This document shows positions 3,105 through 51,035 of a stretch of DNA of 64,000 bases, piece after piece (positions within the stretch are counted from its first letter, which is position 1; each line of letters starts with the position of its first letter). The notes beneath the pieces are model-generated. The model was not told the DNA's origin and searched no databases. It saw nothing but the letters and a program-made list of their open reading frames with translations. The DNA is taken from NCBI GenBank assembly GCA_047495785.1, contig JBLDXI010000045.1, forward strand, positions 434,001-498,000, written 5' to 3'. A program made the translations under genes and the position numbers. This stretch comes from Lepidodermella squamata. Lineage: Eukaryota > Animalia > Gastrotricha.

Positions 3105-5499
3105 ATCTGCCCCCTTACATCACGTCATTCTTCACTTTCTAAGATAAACTAGTAACAAAAATATATAATCCATCATCCCATCATTGAAGCAAGATCTCTA
3201 ACGTTAATGAAAATGAATAACAGATGACAGACATCCTGAGGTAATGCCCTGCGCCCTGAAGAATGTATAAGTATGTTCAGGACTGACGACTTAGGAGCTG
3301 ACTGTTGGAAGTGAAATGTGAAATAAAAAACTAATAACGTGATTGAGCTCAGGAACCCAAAACCTTGCAAAAATGACTGAGCATGGGTACAAAAAACCCT
3401 GATAGTATCCAAAAACCAATTAAGCAGTATAAGTCAGTAGTCAAGAGACAAGATATTTAATTCATGCCATAACTAACATAATTACGATTTGAGCAATGTT
3501 ACTGTTCTTAACATATTTGGAATGCAACTGAGCAGAAGACCATAGAATGAGAAAAGTCAACCAATTCCTTTGCTTATATTCAACGCAATGCCGGCAGGAG
3601 AGGCTGTGCGAAAAAGGGGCTCTTTCCAGTTGATTGATAATAAGCTGCCCGATATTATTTTTATATGAACACATGAATTTGAGAAAAATGTAAATGATTT
3701 TTATTTGCAAGAGAAATAAAATAAATTTTTGTATTTTGCCTTATATTTTATCCTCAAGGTCTGTTGCTTGCCGCGCGAAAATTCAAAAACACCTGGCTGG
3801 CCATGGCCATAGACGCGCTTGACTGGGCTGGGGTGTGTAGCTTTTGGCGATGGAGCTGCCAGAATTCTCTTGAATTCTCATGAATTCTGCATCATGTCGG
3901 TCATTTCAATCCCATGCATCTTACACGAGCGTTTTGAGCGTGAAGTCGGTTACACGACACGGTTGTAAAGAAATGTTACACGTTAAATGTCCAACACTTT
4001 ATTGGGAAAAGTTACTGCTGACCTGATAAAATGGACAAGGATATTTGATGAATACTCTTTCAACAATGTTTCACAGCGTTTTACACTTCATTTTTAAATC
4101 TGTGCTTACTGCATGGCTTAATAATGCATCATGAAGTCGGTCAACAACAAGCAACCAAAAAGAAGCTCTCCTAGTACACCCTTCACAATTAGGGGACGTC
4201 CCGATTGGTAACGTGTAACGTCCGACATAGTAATACTGATACCAGATATTACTGTTTTATTTGCTACAATTTTCCTCGCTATTCGCAACAAATTGTCCTG
4301 GCGTCTCACCACAGATGTCTTATCTTGTTCAAGATTCAAGATCACAAGCAACGCTTCATATAAGTATATATTTTAAAAACTTGATACAAAACTCTCAATG
4401 CCATAGGCTTGTCGTCTCTCGGGCGAACAACATGAAATAACTGAATATTTGGCGTAGACGATTCCTCTTACATTAGGTAGCTTTTGATATATTAGTTAAC
4501 GAACTTGGTTGAATTTGAAGTTCCTGATCTCAGCGATTATCGTTACTTCAACAATTTTCCGTGAATAGCGAAAAAGTTGTTGCAGAAAAATGCATTGGCA
4601 GACATGTATCGATTGCAAGACAGTCGAACTATGCTACTATTTGCGGATATTGTAAATTTGAACGCAAAACCTGATTTCGCTGATTGGACTGCGCTAAATA
4701 TGAAGAAGCAGGAGTGTGTGCCCAATTACATAAATTGTAAAAGATTAAGCCAATCATACGACTGCAATTTTGAGAGGTGAAAATGCGGGCTTATGAGACT
4801 TCGAAGGTCGACAAGCCTCGTATAAACCCAGGTCACGCATGAAAACACCCGCGGTAGGTGTAGGAGTACAAAGTGTAAAATCAAAGATCGATGGGATTGG
4901 AAGTGATTTGCAGATCATGTATGCGCTGACAATAATTGTGATAAAATTAGACGGTATTAATATTAACATGAAATATATATTGGTATTGCTCATTTTCCTT
5001 CTTCGTGTTTTTTCTCGTAATTTTGAATTCGCTTTGGTCAAAAAACGTAAATCAATAATAAGAAATGGGTTCGGTATGTTTTTTTTGCATTTCTCAAGCT
5101 AAAATATATGAAAATCTTGGAAGAAAGTGAAGCTGCTCTTGAAACTTCTTGAATAGCACAATTTTCAAGGATTGACAGCTTTGGATTCGTCGTCTTCATT
5201 CCATATATAATATATATTTTCACCTTCAACTTCAGCGTGAAAACAATCCAGATTTTTTGCAAATGTAATTTTGGGAGAGCACGCGTTTCAATATTATTTG
5301 CCGTGCACATTTCAATTCCCTGTCTCACCTTTTTGCAAAAAAATTGATCCATGTCTGCGAGACCTGGCCTGACCTGGCCCGTGCGACTCGTGCCAAGGAC
5401 AACCCATCCACGTGCCGCCAAAAATTAACCTGTCCACGCAGTTTTGAATAACAAAAAGTTACACTTGCTTACCGGGAAGTGGACTAGACTTTTTTATTT

Positions 5500-42177: not shown

Positions 42178-43279
42178 ATGAAGCTCCTACTCTGCCTGCA
42201 ACTTGCTATTATCCTTATCACTGTTTTTGCAGCTGAAATATATGCAGTAGCTCCACTCTATGGAACATGTGACCCTAACTCAAAAAACGCTACCTGTGGC
42301 CGAAATGCAGAGTGCGTCCAGGTTCCAGGGTGCTCAATGGGTGTCTGCAGGTGCCGCGATTCAAAAGATCGCCGGTTTTACGCAACATCCAACGGAATTG
42401 ACTGCGAGGGAATTCTAGCTCTAGGGGCTAATTGCTCAGGTATCGCTGGGTCCTCAGCCCTACCGCTTCGTGCTGAATGCGACTCAACTGGTACCGTGGT
42501 TTGTGAGGCTAATCTCGAAAAAAAGGGCGACTACGAATGCGTCGCGCCGTCTACGTGGATTCGAATGCCTGGCCTGGCGTGTAAATTGAATTCTACAACA
42601 GACTGCAATCCGCTGCTTGGCCTCGTTTGTTCGCCGCCGTCCAATAAATGCGCGTGTTTGCGCGGCACAACTTGGAAGGCCGACAAGTGTGAGACGACTT
42701 CGTCCGACCTCGAGTGCCGCTCTCACAATGATTGCCGATTTGGCTACGGCGAAAATGCTGTCTGTTTACACAACGCCCGCTGCATGTGTGGTGCCGGATC
42801 GACACCGGTTATGTACGCCCAGCTGAGCAACGATAATCAACGCAAATTTTTCATTAATCATTACTGCGCCCCAGGTAATAACCAACTTTTTTGCCAAAAT
42901 AGGAAAAAATCAAAGAGTTTAGATACCTTAAAAAATCCAGCTTAATAATAATAATATTTTGCTGTAAATTAATTTCAATTTTCAATTAATTTAATTAATT
43001 TTTTAATTTTTTGTGAATTAAGTTTTAATTTTTCTAATTTTTCCAGAACGAAGCATTTTCAGTGCCCTGAACCAAAACTGCACCGTCCCAGGATTCCCGA
43101 CTGGTCCTAAGGAGTTCTGCGGTAAATCTCTAGTTTGTCATCACTGCCCAGAATTCGGCTTGATGCCTGAGATGGGTCGGTGTTTGAACCTGACGAGCAC
43201 TCAATATGCGCCAGTTCGATCGAAAATTTACACAGCTGTAACTGCCGAAGGAATGTGCGCCGAAAACCGAGTTAATTGA
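42178..43279 (+). CDS. Secreted Cys-rich protein with EB/EGF-like modules
   Basis: Signal peptide MKLLLCLQLAIILITVFAA; repeated CxC-containing modules (CGRNAEC...CRC, NAVCLHNARCMC); phase-1 intron 42874-43046 continues the frame to TGA 43277-43279. Confidence 0.75.
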
Positions 43280-44036
43280 ACAGCGCCTTGGAAAAATAAT
43301 AAAAACAGTCATTTCTTCTTGCCACTCAGCTTTTATTCATTATCATAATATCGTTTTTTGTGTTGATTTTCATTTAGATTTTGTATTCAGCCGTACACGT
43401 TTCGCTAAGTATAAGAAGATCGGGTTTTCACAGCACTATCAATAAGATGATGAGAGAAGCCTACGTAGAAGTTTGGCTAAAACAAGACTGGCGGAGGGTA
43501 GTGAGTAGCAACTCAATGACGATTATTTTGATGCGATAACGACAGCAAATCTTTTTTCTATATATCTGAGGAGAGAAATAATTCATGTGCGCTACAACTG
43601 CAATCACACGCTCATAAAGGTTTTACGTCATCCCAATCGAAAAAGGTTCACAGTATTTTGTTTTCACTCACATCAGAGGTTTGAATAGAACAAGGTGATG
43701 AAAAACGCGGCTACCTCTCGCAAAAAATTGGTATTCAATTCACGTGATAATATCTCAGGTAATATCAGGATGATTATATATTCGCCACGCTTCACTGAAT
43801 CGCAACAAAATAATGATGATTAGGCATCACTCACGCACAGTATTATTATTATAAAGGAGAATTTTCGTATGACGATTTTACGCGACATCAAAAACTCAGG
43901 CTTTTTATAGGGCTACGGCGCGAAACGATAACAAAGCCAAATGTTTATATAATAAGCAGATCGCATATCAGATTTCATCTCAGCCAAAAATCAATTTTTG
44001 ATATTATCGAATTTTTTTAATACTTTTATACGATAA

Positions 44037-45910
44037 TTTATTCTGATTTTTTCTCGATTTTTTTCAAGACGGGGATCACGCTAATTACTATCGCTTGACT
44101 ATCAGATATTCGACGGGTTATATAATGCTGTTCGTTGTTATATGGATGATTTCTCTAGATGAAACTCTTGAAAGTCGGGTAACAATAAAGAGAGTAGAAA
44201 AAGAAAGCCGAAAAAAAATCGAACGCGCTACAAAAAGTTGGCGCCTTCGTTGCTATGTACAACATTTTTGTTTTATCACAGTTTGACAGCTGGCTGTCGA
44301 CAAGGCTTGCGTCCGTACGTCGTTCTTCCCCTCACTTTTTACAACATGCATTCATTTATCACAACATGTCGGTGCTAGATGCATCGACTCGCTTGGTCCC
44401 TGGGCGTCCAAAAACCACCCGCGTCCACGTGTTAGAAAAATATCAATCATCTTCGCACATCACGCCGTCCAATATAATCATTCCATCACGCTCCGTCCAA
44501 CATTCACATCATCTCTCGGTACAGATAAGATGAGAAAATGAGAAAAAAGATTGTTGCGTAATAAGGTAACAAGTCCTATTACAGGCAAGACTTGGCCTAT
44601 ATACAACTGAGATCATTTTTCCGCGCGAAAACTGGCTACGTAAGAATTCTCAATACTATTTAGCAGAGCTATTGCTATCATAGGATACAATAGTTACAGC
44701 TCTTTTAAATAACAACCAGAGAATAGTAGGTATATCGCTGATAGAGTGAGACGTTTTAGTAGAAAAAAATAGAACGAAATCAGTCGTTACAGTATGTTTT
44801 TTTGGTCTTATAATAAGCTTTTAAGATTCTGGCTGAGAGTTTGATAGATTTGAGATTATCTGCTCATCGACTTGCCACTCTGACTCGAATTCGAATTCAT
44901 GACCAAGATGTGCCAATTCGCAGCTTGTCGCTCGCGAACAGTAAGACGAGCATTCCAGATACTCTCTGTATTGAAGATAAAACGTTATAAAAAGGCTGAG
45001 AAATTCGGGTACACCATACTCACCTTACTCGCCCACGAACGAAGCGCGTGTCCTTGATGCTCAGGACGCGGCGCGTCAAATCGCAAGTTAACACGTCTAA
45101 AGAAAATGAACAGAAAAGGTTAGAAATTTCTGGAAAATAGCTGGTGGTTTTTTGGTGGTCTGATCGAAGTGAAAGGTAAAAAGCGCGCTGGGGTGGGCCT
45201 TTTATAGCGCAGGTAGCACGAAAATTGGCTCGGCTGTTCGGTTGTGTTTATGCGCACACAAACTCGCAATAATGAGCGCCTATTTTATTTTAAAACTTAA
45301 AGAATTATTTATGACGCGAGATGAGCGCGCGCGCGCTCAGTGGAGAGAGAAAAATAAAACGCGCCTCGCTCTCTTTCGTCTTCGGGCGAAGGGCGCGCTA
45401 TTCATTATTGAAAGGCAGGTAGTAGGTGTATTGAGCGAAAATTTCGTCGCTCTAAAAGAGCGCGCCGGCTTTGTGTGTTGATTGGCGACGGCGTTGAACG
45501 CAATAATAAAACGCGATAGAACAATAATAGGAGTAATAACAACCGAAAACGTCACAGCAGCAGCAGCAGCGATGGCAGGCAGTTGAATGGCGCGCGCACG
45601 GGAGTGGATGGGCGCGCGCTCGTGTATTGATTGGCGCGCGTCCCTAGCAACAGCGCTCGATGACCTTGCGGCGAGACGCGCGCGCTGTTATAAACGCATA
45701 TAAAATGCAATTGATTGCGTGCTGCCACTTTGATTGCCTTGTCACAGCAGCGCCGGGAGAACGCTCGTACAAGTCGTCCGGTTTCGGGCGCCAAAGTTGA
45801 TTGTTTGCGCTGAACAACGCGCGCGCGCAAGGCGAAAAGCGCAATATTTTATTTATAGTTATATACCTGTGATGGTACTCTAAGATGCGGGCAACACCTG
45901 CGCGTGCGTG
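44037..45910 (-). ncRNA. Putative spliced lncRNA or small-ORF transcript with a miRNA/Pumilio-site-rich 3' region
   Basis: TATAAAA at 45206-45200 and 45941-45935; donor at 45866; acceptor TTTTCTTTAG at 45097; exon 45096-45024; 58-nt intron 45023-44966 (GTGAGT...TACAG); AATAAA at 44042-44037; first AUG ORFs only 18 and 14 aa. Confidence 0.55.
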
Positions 45911-46851
45911 TGGCCAGCGCCTTGTAGCCCACCTTTTTATAGGCCGGGCGGATGTTCGAATGTCGACGAGTGATTTCGGTGACTAAACAGAGCCGTGCGG
46001 CAGCTGTTCGCATCTCCAAGAGCAATCAACAATCATGACATGGGGCCTCTTCGCTGGCTATAATAAAGTAATAATACAGGGCGATGATGATGACAGACGT
46101 CTTGGCAGAGGTAAACGCACCGATCGATCGATCAGGGTTCACCTGCGTTGCAAAACGTGCCGACACAGTGGCAAGTCAAGCCTCGTTAAAATTGTGCGCA
46201 CGCCGCCACCTTAATGGAAAATTATTATCACAGCTATTAATTAGCGATATATAAATTAAATGATTCGAAACGAAACGCGAGAAACAGCGTTTACTTTTAT
46301 TTTCGCGACGAAGCGTGGTTTATAAACTAGGCGTTGCGCGACGTGCGATAATTTTCGTGAATAAAAACCGAGGGAAGCAAGGGAGATAGATGATAAGCTG
46401 GTTGCGGGCGCATCACGCGGTTGCGCAACCGCAAAAATATACCAGCGAGGAGCGTGCGAGTGCGATTTTGTCGGTGCGCACCGGGCGCGCGGCGCCTCGA
46501 AACCAAGAACAATAACATGATTATTATTACGGGCTAAGATAATAATTCTTCCCGGTGCGACAAGTGTCGTCTTCCTCCAGCCGTAATCCATCGAGCCGCA
46601 ACGTTATTAGCCCACACCTTTCTTCATTGCGCACATTATCTCGTTGAGGCCGACCGGGCTCATTCAGCCCAACTTATCAGTGACATCAGGTAACAGTCTA
46701 ATTTTCACGTTACTCTCACGTCGATTTCTTTCGAGATTTGCTGATGAAGCCAGCAAAAAGTGTGGTGAAGTAAATAAAATGAGCTTATGCATAATTGTGA
46801 TGAGGCATGTTTTTGCATATTTTAAACACATCTTGGGATTTGCGAAGCCGA

Positions 46852-46923
46852 GGTTCCATGGTGTAGCGGTTAGCACTCTGGACTCTGAATCCAGCGACTC
46901 GAGTTCGATTCTCGATGGGACCT
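46852..46923 (+). tRNA. tRNA-Gln(CTG)
   Basis: GGTTCCATGGTGTAGCGGTTAGCACTCTGGA-CTCTGAA-TCCAG...GAGTTCGATTCTC...TGGGACCT; 72-nt cloverleaf. Confidence 0.95.
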
Positions 46924-47245
46924 TCACATTTTGCTGGCAATTTTTTTATTTTTATTTTTATTTATTTATTTTTTCATTTTATCAGGTCTGTATTGCAATG
47001 AACAAGCCTGAAATCTTTCCTTATAAAAAAATTAAATTGGCTGTAATAATTCAGATTCCCATCGGATGCAGACATTGATAACTTGAAATAGCAGGAACGT
47101 TATGAAGTTTATGAAAATTACGTGACTCCAGGTATGCTAAGAAAAAGTAAACCAATAATTTTTAAATGGAATAATTTATTAAGCAAAGCCTGTGTCGATG
47201 AAAATAAAAAAGGGTGGTATCCATTGCTAAAATGAATCATATAAT

Positions 47246-47326
47246 TGTGTGCATATGCAAATTATTCATAAAATAATATCGACTACTATAATAAAAAGCG
47301 GCTCGAATCTTTAAAAGATAATAATT
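47246..47326 (+). promoter_or_regulatory. U4 snRNA promoter (two conserved blocks, one containing octamer ATGCAAAT)
   Basis: Blocks TGTGTGCATATGCAAA (starting at -81) and ATAATAAAAAGCGG.TCGA are shared with the copy at 24479, while the spacer differs. Confidence 0.75.
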
Positions 47327-47464
47327 AGCTTTGCGCAGTGGCAGTTCCATACTCAGTGAGGTGCAAACCGAGAGGTGGAAATTGCTAATTGAAAACTACC
47401 CCAATTACCCGCTCTGAGGACCTACGGGTCCCCTGTAGCACTTTCTGGAGCCCCACAAGGGGCT
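47327..47464 (+). ncRNA. U4: U4 spliceosomal snRNA
   Basis: 5' AGCTTTGCGCAGTGGCAGT (U4/U6 stem II); k-turn stem-loop with TGAGG...CCGAG; TTGCTAATTGAAAACT (stem I); Sm-position ACTTTCTGG between hairpins; terminal hairpin AGCCCC-ACAA-GGGGCT. Confidence 0.93.
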
Positions 47465-47558
47465 ATGAACATAAAAACAAATTAGCGGTTTTTATTTGTT
47501 TGAAGGCTCGGAAAACATCGATGAAAAATTATTAACTATGCAAAAGGCGAACATTATT

Positions 47559-48758
47559 TTAGCTGGAAAACGGGCTTTGTACTTCAGATTGACCTCCTAA
47601 GAAAGCGTCTGGCCACAGACCAAGTATAGGCGATAAGGCGCTTTGACAGTATTCCGTCGATTCTGTCATATCGGAGCTGTAAGATGCAGAGCTAGCTGCC
47701 TCCAAATCATCCATCGAAGTGCGCATATCGTCAAAAAACGCGTCGTCAATCAGTGCCGTCGTACATGGTGGAGGTTCGATTGGATAATGTTTGCAGACAA
47801 TGCACTCGAGATCGTTTGAAAACGGATTAAATACCGGGAAAACTTCGATTTTCGTGTTCAAAAACGTCCCGTCTTTACGAACAGCAACCAGCCCATGAAC
47901 AACCGCCTTATTCGCCCGCCCTTGAACAGCACTCGTCAGTACCTGTGTGATAGTTTCGTAAAATTGAGGATAGACGCTCAAGAAAAAATTTGCGCCAATA
48001 GCCTCGAGCGGTAGCCAGCCAATCGCTTGAGTCATTTTTTCGTCTGCGAAAGTTGTTGTGAACATTTCGTCGAACTGATGCCTGGTTGTGAAATGGCGCG
48101 AAGTGACTGGTTCGAGAATTGAACTCTGCGGCCGAATCCATCTCGCGAGACCGACAAAACACAAAGTAAGCTCATCGTAAGATGCAAGTTGCCCGCAAAC
48201 TTCGAACGGTTTCGATTCGGAATCGCCGTTATAAGATCTTAAATTACAATGAAAATGCCGCCGCCGACTTCCACGGCCGATTTCAATCGGCGATTGCATT
48301 GAGGACCGGATACGGATCAAATCTTGATCACTGCCTGATATTTGATCGAAAATAGTCGAATTCAGCCACGATTCTTGCGTAGCGCCGAGTAAGTTGAAAA
48401 CAGTTGGTGTTACAAAGCGAATTCGCCCGGTATTGATATCGGCGGCGAAAATGAAGCTATCCGTCGCTGTGAGCAATAATTTGGCGAATTCGTCGTCGTC
48501 TAAGAACTGGGCCTGTCTCGCCGACTGCGCTCGAATCAAATCGACAGCCCATTTCATCACCTCCAGTTTTATTGGGTTTTTTCGTTTGCGAATGGCACCT
48601 GATGAAGACGACGCGGCTGGTTTATTCCTGCCTTCTGTGATCCAGTTGCGATACTGATGTAGCATCAGAATGAACTTTTTAAATTCATGCCGGCGACGTC
48701 GCTCCACTTCAGCATGGCTAATAGTTGGTGATGGCTCGTTAGGTGAAACGTTGCTCAT
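47559..48758 (-). CDS. Divergent ARNT/BMAL-class bHLH-PAS factor, intronless
   Basis: Basic region SHAEVERRRR, helix 2 KLEVMKWAVDLI, PAS-A entry FLDDDEFAKLLLTATDSFIF, PAS-B FTTRH, PAC end FNPFSNDLECIVCKH. Confidence 0.82.
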   Translation of the reverse strand: MSNVSPNEPSPTISHAEVERRRRHEFKKFILMLHQYRNWITEGRNKPAASSSSGAIRKRKNPIKLEVMKWAVDLIRAQSARQAQFLDDDEFAKLLLTATDSFIFAADINTGRIRFVTPTVFNLLGATQESWLNSTIFDQISGSDQDLIRIRSSMQSPIEIGRGSRRRHFHCNLRSYNGDSESKPFEVCGQLASYDELTLCFVGLARWIRPQSSILEPVTSRHFTTRHQFDEMFTTTFADEKMTQAIGWLPLEAIGANFFLSVYPQFYETITQVLTSAVQGRANKAVVHGLVAVRKDGTFLNTKIEVFPVFNPFSNDLECIVCKHYPIEPPPCTTALIDDAFFDDMRTSMDDLEAASSASYSSDMTESTEYCQSALSPILGLWPDAFLGGQSEVQSPFSS

Positions 48759-49751: not shown

Positions 49752-51035
49752 TTAAATCGGCGAATTATCATAATTGGTCGATGACGAATAAGGAGGAGTA
49801 CCGAATGTTCCGAGCGCCGCTGTAGTCTCATTGTTTGTCCCAACGGCCTGAACTCCTTGAACCAAATTGGGTGGCGAATGGCCTCCAGTTGGCATAAACG
49901 CTGCCGACGGATGGTGAATCGGATTACCAAGCGTGGCCGGGTAGTGCTTGCAAACGATGAATAGCACTCTTTTAGAGAATGGGTTCACGATTGGAGCAAT
50001 TTTTACGTCGAAAATCGTCGAGCCTACGAAGCCATATTGAGCAACTGCTTGCAACCCACTAATCACACGCTGTTCCGTCGTTGCGCCACTCGCGATTGCG
50101 TTGAGATATTCAGAAAGCTGCGAATCGAAAGCGTCCGCGTAAATCGATCGCAAAAAATTTGGCACTGTCGCGAAATCGTGAGGCCACTTCCAGCCTAAAT
50201 AACACGTTAATCGATGATCTGCGTAAGTGACCGGAAAGTTCGGCGCCTCGATTTTGTGACGAGTCGTGAAATGATCGGAATTCGACTCGGCGACGAACCC
50301 CGGCGTCTCTCGAATCAATTGAGCAGCCGCTACGAAGCAATTGCCATTTTTAAGGTGGCCACTGATTCGAAATTTTTGATAATTGCCGTTATTATTCGAT
50401 CTGATTTTGCAGTGAACTTCACTACTTGTCGCGTGTTCAGCATCGATTCTCGGTGATTCAGGCGATGAAGTGACTGTGTAGTTGAAAATTCGTGAATCTT
50501 CAGGGTGAATGAATTCATTAATCGATGGCGAGGACAGCCAATCATTTGCTGTGAACCCGGTTAAATCCCAGACGGAATTTGTGACGGCTAATACTTTACC
50601 GTTCGGGATACGAATCGAAAACATGAAGCAATCACAGGCTTTCAGCATCAAGCCCTGGAATTCGTTGTCTGACGTGAAAAGCGGCCGGTTAATCGCGGTG
50701 TTAAACGGTGGTTGGCATTCAATAAATTCGATGGTTTTCTCTAAAATCGCCAGCTTTTTCGGCCGCCGATCGCCGCTGGAAGGCTGGTCGTCTATGTAAC
50801 TCGCATCAAGCTGTAGACACCTTGGAACGTACTGCCCCAGCATTTGGACGTATTTAGTAAATTTCATCCGCCGGCACTGCTCGACCTCGCGGTGCGTTCT
50901 TCGCCGGCGCTCGGTTAACGGGTCAATATCGCCGTAGTCGTAGTCTGCCGATTCACATTTTGCACTGTTTGAATCGAGCAGCTCATCGTCAAGCGAACTG
51001 TGCCCCCTCATGTCGTCCATTCCATGCATTGACAT
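49752..51035 (-). CDS. Second divergent ARNT/BMAL-class bHLH-PAS factor, intronless
   Basis: RRRTHREVEQCRR, KKLAILEKTIEFI, SDNEFQGLMLKACDCFMF, FIHPED, FTTRH, NPFSKRVLFIVCKHYP; collinear with the neighbour. Confidence 0.82.
   Translation of the reverse strand: MSMHGMDDMRGHSSLDDELLDSNSAKCESADYDYGDIDPLTERRRRTHREVEQCRRMKFTKYVQMLGQYVPRCLQLDASYIDDQPSSGDRRPKKLAILEKTIEFIECQPPFNTAINRPLFTSDNEFQGLMLKACDCFMFSIRIPNGKVLAVTNSVWDLTGFTANDWLSSPSINEFIHPEDSRIFNYTVTSSPESPRIDAEHATSSEVHCKIRSNNNGNYQKFRISGHLKNGNCFVAAAQLIRETPGFVAESNSDHFTTRHKIEAPNFPVTYADHRLTCYLGWKWPHDFATVPNFLRSIYADAFDSQLSEYLNAIASGATTEQRVISGLQAVAQYGFVGSTIFDVKIAPIVNPFSKRVLFIVCKHYPATLGNPIHHPSAAFMPTGGHSPPNLVQGVQAVGTNNETTAALGTFGTPPYSSSTNYDNSPI

Follow-up and report, generated by a model that had tools for sequence, protein, structure and literature searches.

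We analysed a 64,000-nt window of the Lepidodermella squamata genome (contig JBLDXI010000045.1, positions 434,001 to 498,000), which carries on its minus strand, at 44636-44583, an extended complementary site for the microRNA (miRNA) bantam. This miRNA is among the most abundant and developmentally important in protostomes, and it controls growth and apoptosis in flies. The site lies in a spliced, leader-capped RNA and pairs with the species' own bantam guides through the seed and again through a long 3′ segment. We give roughly even odds (about 0.5) to the interpretation that this is a genuine, high-affinity bantam-family site in an abundant long non-coding RNA (lncRNA), and that it acts on the miRNA rather than on protein output. 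The two forms that such an action could take, true target-directed miRNA degradation (TDMD) and titration only, are each doubtful when considered singly, and to the same degree.

Bantam pairing and the RNA that carries the site

The original prediction placed a bantam site, a Pumilio element and a miR-31 site side by side, and direct reading of the minus strand at 44636-44583 confirmed the motif string (the coordinates first proposed take in two extra 5′ bases, GC). The 54-nt module reads, in order, GCCAGTTTTCGC / GCGGAAAAA / TGATCTCA / GT / TGTATATA / G / GCCAA / G / TCTTGCCT. The first element, GCCAGTTTTCGC (44625..44636), is the bantam 3′-pairing segment and complements guide positions g22-g11. 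It is followed by an unpaired target loop of 9 nt, GCGGAAAAA (44616..44624), and by the bantam 8-mer seed match TGATCTCA (44608..44615), read directly from the sequence, which complements g8-g1. A GT spacer (44607-44606) separates this seed match from the Pumilio response element TGTATATA (44598..44605; consensus UGUANAUA), which begins 2 nt 3′ of the seed match. After a single spacer G (44597) comes the miR-31/72 site (44583..44596), made up of the supplementary region GCCAA (44596-44592), a G facing g9 of miR-31 (44591) and the seed match TCTTGCCT (44590-44583). The target nucleotides opposite g1 of the two miRNAs (t1) are 25 nt apart. In the entire host transcript there is a single seed match for bantam, counted as a 7- or 8-mer (0.05 expected per transcript), and a single one for miR-31, with perfect Pumilio elements at two places. 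This makes it a single module; a dense miRNA/Pumilio array is not supported by these counts.

We scanned the genome (121 Mb in 151 contigs) for the guides that this species encodes. A pattern of the bantam seed plus GAAARC matched at seven places, three of which are no more than 750 nt apart on C17, and when these loci were read and folded, five good hairpins emerged, all of them carrying the mature sequence, with the seed UGAGAUC, in the 3′ arm. Four of these genes form a cluster of about 900 nt at C17:1496404-1497317 and the fifth is at C38:419780, with folding energies from -29.5 to -47.7 kcal/mol (n = 5). A stricter bantam pattern recovered exactly the same five genes genome-wide, with no additional exact member. 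Rfam mir-81 matched three of the hairpins weakly (31.4 bits or less, under the gathering score; best E = 0.001), and the Rfam bantam model gave none among the 58 that were scored of 61,279 candidates in the genome, a number too small to be informative. A Drosophila-type bantam pattern had no match in this genome. The annelid/mollusc-type bantam 23-mer behind the original prediction, searched with up to three mismatches, matched the genome once; that copy has a mutated seed and no fold (z = +1.4) and was rejected as a miRNA gene.

The mature bantam sequences from C17 are UGAGAUCA followed by GGG, AGG or AAG and then UGAAAACUGGC, together with UGAGAUCUGAGUGAGAACUGGC, and the C38 gene yields UGAGAUCAUGGUGAAAACUGGC. 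These paralogues differ from one another almost only at g9-10. Their 3′ halves read GUGAAAACUGGC in four of the five and GUGAGAACUGGC in one, with the 3′ ends GAAAACUGGC (four paralogues) and GAGAACUGGC (the fifth). The 3′ segment on which the predicted pairing depends is therefore present in this species, as GAAAACUG in four paralogues and as GAGAACUG in the other. The single miR-31 gene encodes AGGCAAGAUGCUGGCAUAGCUG, with C at g11. Its hairpin at C3:4327342 folds at -51 kcal/mol (z = -4.3), and Rfam places it in mir-72, which represents nematodes in the mir-31 clan. At approximately 126-145 nt, the miR-31/72 precursor is of unusual length; it carries a branched insert of about 70 nt in its terminal loop, and is still strongly folded at that z score.

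With the species' own guides, the predicted arrangement of seed pairing, target bulge and long 3′ pairing was borne out, and the extents of all three parts had to be revised. Seed pairing covers g1-8 rather than g1-10, the loop has 9 nt rather than 7 nt, and the 3′ pairing covers g11-22 rather than g11-20. The 3′ duplex is unbroken over these 12 pairs and consists of a G:C pair at g11, one U:G wobble at g12 and ten Watson-Crick pairs at g13-22. TGATCTCA pairs with g1-8 in four paralogues; the remaining one, the fourth in the C17 cluster, has U at g8 and pairs at g1-7. In the C38 paralogue U9 also pairs with A44616, which extends the seed pairing to g1-9 and leaves a loop of 8 nt. The 9-nt loop faces g9-10, the very positions at which the paralogues vary. 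The species' bantam paralogues form duplexes of -28.6 to -31.0 kcal/mol with the site, compared to -24.6 kcal/mol for the bantam sequence of the original prediction. The species-specific 3′ end (..CUGGC) contributes two more pairs, so that the prediction passed a 1-in-16 blind test. For miR-31, the proposed seed pairing at g1-8 stood and the supplementary pairing at g11-15 did not. GCCA pairs with g15-g12 only, because the species' miR-31 has C at g11, and a G:U pair is added at g9. In the usual nomenclature this is a 7mer-m8 site with four supplementary pairs.

The site is transcribed, as the original prediction required. We used contigs from sequencing runs that behave as RNA (X1, X2 and X5) or as genomic DNA (X4). 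Coverage by the RNA-like runs is confined to 43200-45098, with none at 45170-48300, whereas X4 covers everything. A 58-nt intron (44966..45023) is joined out in X1, X2 and X5 and not in the DNA run X4, and because it reads GT..AG on the minus strand, the transcript comes from that strand. The first exon (45024..45096, minus strand) is preceded by an acceptor AG at 45098-45097. There the X1 and X5 contigs share an identical loose end and run on past 45098 into a common leader ending ..CTGCGAATTTGATTTGTGTCTAAG. The second exon (43312..44965, minus strand) holds the site and is spanned by overlapping X5 contigs (43334-45098); an X1 contig ends loosely in poly-T before 43312. The signal AATAAA is at 43337-43332, and poly(A) addition follows about 20 nt on, near 43312. 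The mature RNA thus consists of the leader, 45096-45024 and 44965-43312, or 1,727 nt (about 1.73 kb) without the leader, with the site approximately 400 nt from its 5′ end, within record 24 of the X5 contigs. A CCAAT box and TATAAAA on the minus strand at 45200..45229, about 100-130 nt upstream of the trans-splice acceptor, form a putative promoter, and the uncovered stretch from 45170 to 48300 fits a removed outron.

No minus-strand open reading frame longer than 42 aa was found inside the transcript (the longest is 42 aa), Rfam gave no family match to it, and its locus is single copy in the genome. Contig depth in X1, a crude measure, is approximately 3,500-5,400 for this RNA; the convergent neighbour has 65 and the bHLH-PAS gene 5-6, and the RNA is clearly very abundant in that run. 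The host is a previously unannotated, single-copy lncRNA at 43312-45229 on the minus strand, including its putative promoter and a short outron. We also considered whether the plus strand might be a degenerate bantam gene (bantam-like with a 7-nt insertion). This was rejected: the plus strand has no hairpin and the RNA comes from the minus strand, and the site is therefore not a decayed bantam gene.

Chance, Pumilio and rival explanations

Seed pairing, a central bulge and long 3′ pairing together make up the architecture of ZSWIM8-dependent TDMD triggers. ZSWIM8/Dora/EBAX-1 is conserved across animals, and we assume its presence in this genome on that ground. If Argonaute carrying any of the five bantam paralogues were to bind the 8-mer seed match, the 9-nt target loop would be skipped opposite g9-10, the only positions at which the paralogues vary, and g11-22 would then pair right up to the miRNA 3′ end. 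Pairing that reaches so far would be expected to free the miRNA 3′ end from the PAZ pocket. The outcome would be tight sequestration of bantam or, in a stronger version, ZSWIM8-type degradation. The lncRNA might in that case be a family-wide bantam trigger, which pairs with the seed and the shared 3′ end and loops out the variable centre, with a loop longer than in known triggers; we regard this as unlikely. The Pumilio and miR-31 elements beside the bantam site might influence how accessible it is. Given the pairing and the sense-strand transcription, it is plausible that the extended bantam site itself is real.

We estimated how often such a site would arise by chance. The 8+8 pattern CAGTTTTC-N(1-25)-TGATCTCA has 11 matches in the whole genome, of which four are antisense matches of the bantam genes and seven are non-gene; the backwards control gave one match and base composition predicts about 2.1. 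When the requirement is raised to the 8-mer plus ten Watson-Crick 3′ pairs with a gap of 1-25 nt, two non-gene sites remain against about 0.1 expected (P = 0.0045 for two or more, calculated for bantam alone). One of these is the site in the host RNA, at 44636-44608, and the other is at C15:5059621. The second site (C15:5059621-5059647, minus strand) consists of GCCAGTTTTC, a 9-nt loop and TGATCTCA. The stop codon of a CELF/Bruno-like RRM gene, encoded on the same strand, is 300-400 nt upstream, so that the site plausibly falls within the 3′ untranslated region (3′UTR) of that gene.

Other matches were rejected as target sites. The 8+8 matches at C26:688847 and C29:3821632 are copies of a palindromic repeat in which the 3′ motif sits in the hairpin loop; the repeat may be a small inverted-repeat element. 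In the C29:3821632 copy, the bantam seed sequence, TGAGATCATCCTTTCCAT, and its complement stand at the start of both arms. A pair of GCCAGTTTTC-A-GATCTC matches, on C16 and C26, has the wrong geometry.

The Pumilio element of the original prediction is present on the transcribed strand as a perfect match to the consensus. Perfect Pumilio elements occur twice in the transcript against 0.21 expected (P = 0.017), and the genome encodes an 8-repeat PUF (Pumilio) protein at C1:1760189-1761058. GTTGT[A/G] followed by an A-rich stretch recurs on the minus strand at 44605, 44365, 44345 and 44261, giving two perfect Pumilio elements (UGUAUAUA and UGUACAUA) and two near-matches; judged by these repeats, the lncRNA may contain a small group of sites for PUF binding. 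That Pumilio gates the bantam site, as was also proposed, is unsupported speculation. Because the element lies 2 nt from the bantam seed match and overlaps the region that faces miR-31 g16-22, its geometry suggests competition with Argonaute complexes, if anything. Predicted accessibility is highest for the bantam 3′-pairing segment, which is unpaired with a probability of 0.76 and stands at the 99th percentile among the 8-mers of the transcript; the Pumilio element is predicted to be at the transcript median.

Run X2 comes from a differently labelled organism that is 95-99% identical and expresses the same spliced RNA. It differs from the 54-nt module at one position (T>A at 44601) and leaves the bantam part unchanged. 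As 44601 is the degenerate N of UGUANAUA, the Pumilio consensus is kept in X2. A scan of metagenome contigs with the module pattern gave no match. A homologue search with the neighbouring bHLH-PAS protein yielded no more distant relative, and an exact-protein look-up of the neighbouring Cys-rich secreted protein, whose gene and the bHLH-PAS pair flank the lncRNA, returned no match.

Several observations weigh against a bantam-directed function. The bantam seed match has a predicted accessibility just at the transcript median, and for the miR-31 seed match, which the folding prediction puts inside a local stem, the figure is the 8th percentile. Conservation is uninformative: X2 is only about 2% diverged overall, and at that event rate one change in 54 nt is the neutral expectation. 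Because the original prediction came from a reading of the whole genome with many miRNAs in mind, a few sites of equal quality would be expected by chance across some 50-100 miRNA families. The target loop also counts against it. Trigger calling in Drosophila takes a bulge of fewer than 7 nt together with an unbroken 3′ run of at least 9 pairs, or of more than 7 pairs falling in the last 8 nt (PMC10102002). Pairing throughout the seed (g2-8), the 3′ pairing (ten Watson-Crick pairs at g13-22, or 12 pairs at g11-22 with one G:U) and the duplex energy of our site fall within that scheme, whereas its loop of 9 target nt against 2 miRNA nt falls outside the under-7-nt rule. Validated triggers have 3-11 unpaired nt (reviewed in PMC10899785), and the 9 + 2 unpaired nt found here are at the upper limit of that range. 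For the CYRANO trigger, which has a 4-nt loop, altered or longer loops substantially cut ZSWIM8 binding and ubiquitylation in vitro (2026 structural study, PMC13083262). Finally, Drosophila bantam is Dora-insensitive in S2 cells, where it has been used as a loading control (PMC10102002, PMC12573233).

These points bear on two rival explanations. Chance complementarity, in which a real host RNA carries the 8 + 12 nt match, the miR-31 seed and the Pumilio motif by coincidence, is a serious contender that we hold to be less likely than not. The 8+8 architecture is expected about twice per miRNA per genome, with a single match in the backwards control. A conserved-miRNA 7-mer would be found within 40 nt about 20% of the time, and the nearby miR-31 seed is not significant; a Pumilio element within 30 nt has a chance of only about 0.3%, but it is one among several motifs that were open to notice. 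Coincidence would also account for a transcript with a single seed match for each miRNA and no array, for the empty metagenome search and the missing conservation signal, and for a loop that exceeds that of typical functional sites. It accounts less well for the fuller architecture. With 18 nt specified, about 0.1 sites are expected, and the two that exist are both in the sense of an expressed RNA or in a 3′UTR context. Moreover, the match improved when the species' own bantam replaced the sequence first assumed, and the unpaired loop coincides with the positions that vary among paralogues.

The site could instead be an ordinary repression module, with the lncRNA itself as the target and the bantam and miR-31 sites cooperating with Pumilio on its stability while bantam levels are unaffected. 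The 25-nt spacing of the seeds is inside the range for cooperative miRNA sites, the transcript has more perfect Pumilio elements than expected in a genome with a Pumilio gene, and the X2 substitution preserves the consensus. Yet repression requires far fewer than 12 pairs reaching g22, and ordinary targets seldom show pairing of this extent. The folding prediction buries the miR-31 seed match, and the host RNA is extremely abundant in X1, unlike a strongly repressed transcript. A Pumilio protein sitting so near the bantam seed match would also cover the stretch opposite miR-31 g16-22, and competition with the Argonaute complexes would then be more likely than cooperation. We consider this explanation improbable.

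If the lncRNA does degrade or titrate the whole bantam family, then abundant 'housekeeping' miRNAs can be targets of TDMD-like control, the accepted trigger geometry widens to long loops, and there is a concrete single-site, single-copy locus at which to study this. As a degradation trigger, the site would have no precedent for bantam and would add to the triggers of vertebrates, nematodes and flies one from another group. If the match is due to chance, what remains is the annotation of a spliced leader, a bantam family and a highly expressed lncRNA.

Other features of the locus and its neighbourhood

The genome encodes the leader joined to the host RNA at 44 other places, and no paper among those searched contains the leader string or the bantam strings. 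Of the leader copies, 27 are exact, and many stand in tandem arrays (C17:1137-1142 kb, C17:1742-1750 kb, C19:1473-1476 kb, C54:2837-2839 kb and C11:1405-1412 kb). In the tandem-array loci that we inspected, the leader is directly followed by a GT donor (GTATGT or GT), and as joined to the AG acceptor in the RNA contigs it ends in ..ACCATCTGCGAATTTGATTTGTGTCTAAG. The leader copies are spliced-leader RNA genes, and this genome uses trans-splicing.

Within the lncRNA, TGGACG(G) occurs four times in 100 nt (44400-44500, minus strand) without forming a hairpin (z = -1.2). The motif has the same sense as the miR-184 5′ end and therefore does not represent target sites. The possibility that the host RNA is a primary transcript of miR-184-like hairpins was rejected on the same z score and the lack of an Rfam match. 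The 3′ end of the lncRNA overlaps by about 13 nt that of the convergent plus-strand gene, which has its poly(A) at 43324. One X5 contig (44084-44121) departs from the locus at 44121 into more than 255 nt absent from the window, and one X1 contig has a run of 20 A after 44164 on the plus strand. An alternative junction or an antisense end could explain these odd ends, as could a chimeric assembly.

The window is eukaryotic, with a U4 small nuclear RNA (snRNA) gene, two tRNAs and the animal genes bHLH-PAS, XAP5/FAM50 and KLRAQ. On the plus strand, a tRNA gene (46852-46923) and the U4 snRNA gene (47327-47462) occupy the interval from the lncRNA to the bHLH-PAS gene; DNA contig depth over them exceeds that of the flanks approximately 10- to 300-fold, which marks both as multi-copy in the genome. 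The minus strand then carries, at 47559-48758 and 49752-51035, a tandem pair of bHLH-PAS-like genes (Pfam PAS and HLH) that apparently lack introns. The protein encoded by the first had no homologue at E ≤ 1e-5 in a word-indexed search of 5.8 billion proteins.

Comparison with known triggers

Typical supplementary pairing comprises 3-5 pairs around g13-16, with small offsets. Like 3′-supplementary and 3′-compensatory sites and sponges, the lncRNA site combines an 8-mer with 3′ pairing across a loop, an arrangement that raises affinity, and an abundant host could titrate the miRNA. It differs from typical supplementary sites in its 12 pairs, which extend to g22, and in an offset of about +7. 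The host also resembles Pumilio-binding lncRNAs of the NORAD type in that a perfect UGUANAUA element adjoins miRNA sites in a non-coding RNA. NORAD has many such elements, however, whereas this lncRNA has two perfect ones, and a spacing of 2 nt is as much a hint of competition as of cooperation.

The triggers identified in Drosophila by Argonaute crosslinking and hybrid sequencing (AGO1-CLASH) are Ago1 for miR-999, Kah for miR-9b and the miR-279 family, h for miR-7, zfh1 for miR-12 and wgn for miR-190 (PMC10102002, PMC12573233). Our candidate, like them, comes from a protostome and combines a seed match with a central bulge and an unbroken run of more than 7 pairs on the 3′ side. In contrast, none of the Drosophila triggers targets bantam, and the bulge rule that they follow does not hold here. 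In Kah, regulatory sites can be clustered and the flanking sequence matters (PMC10102002, PMC12573233).

The reference ZSWIM8-dependent trigger is CYRANO (OIP5-AS1), which acts on miR-7 (PMC11662681, PMC13083262). Like CYRANO, the lncRNA is a non-coding host with a single site that pairs with the seed and then up to the miRNA 3′ end, and in both the loop is asymmetric, with more target than miRNA nucleotides and with g9-10 unpaired. The target loop is 9 nt here and 4 nt in CYRANO, and CYRANO is deeply conserved and experimentally validated, whereas the bantam site is a prediction. A parallel for its breadth is the C. elegans lncRNA tts-2, in which a single site clears the whole of the abundant mir-35-42 family (PMC12324485). 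Like tts-2, the bantam site would address, from one place in a lncRNA, every member of a multi-paralogue family through the parts that the members share. tts-2 does so by seed pairing alone and has been validated genetically, whereas the predicted bantam site would add 12 further pairs at the 3′ end.

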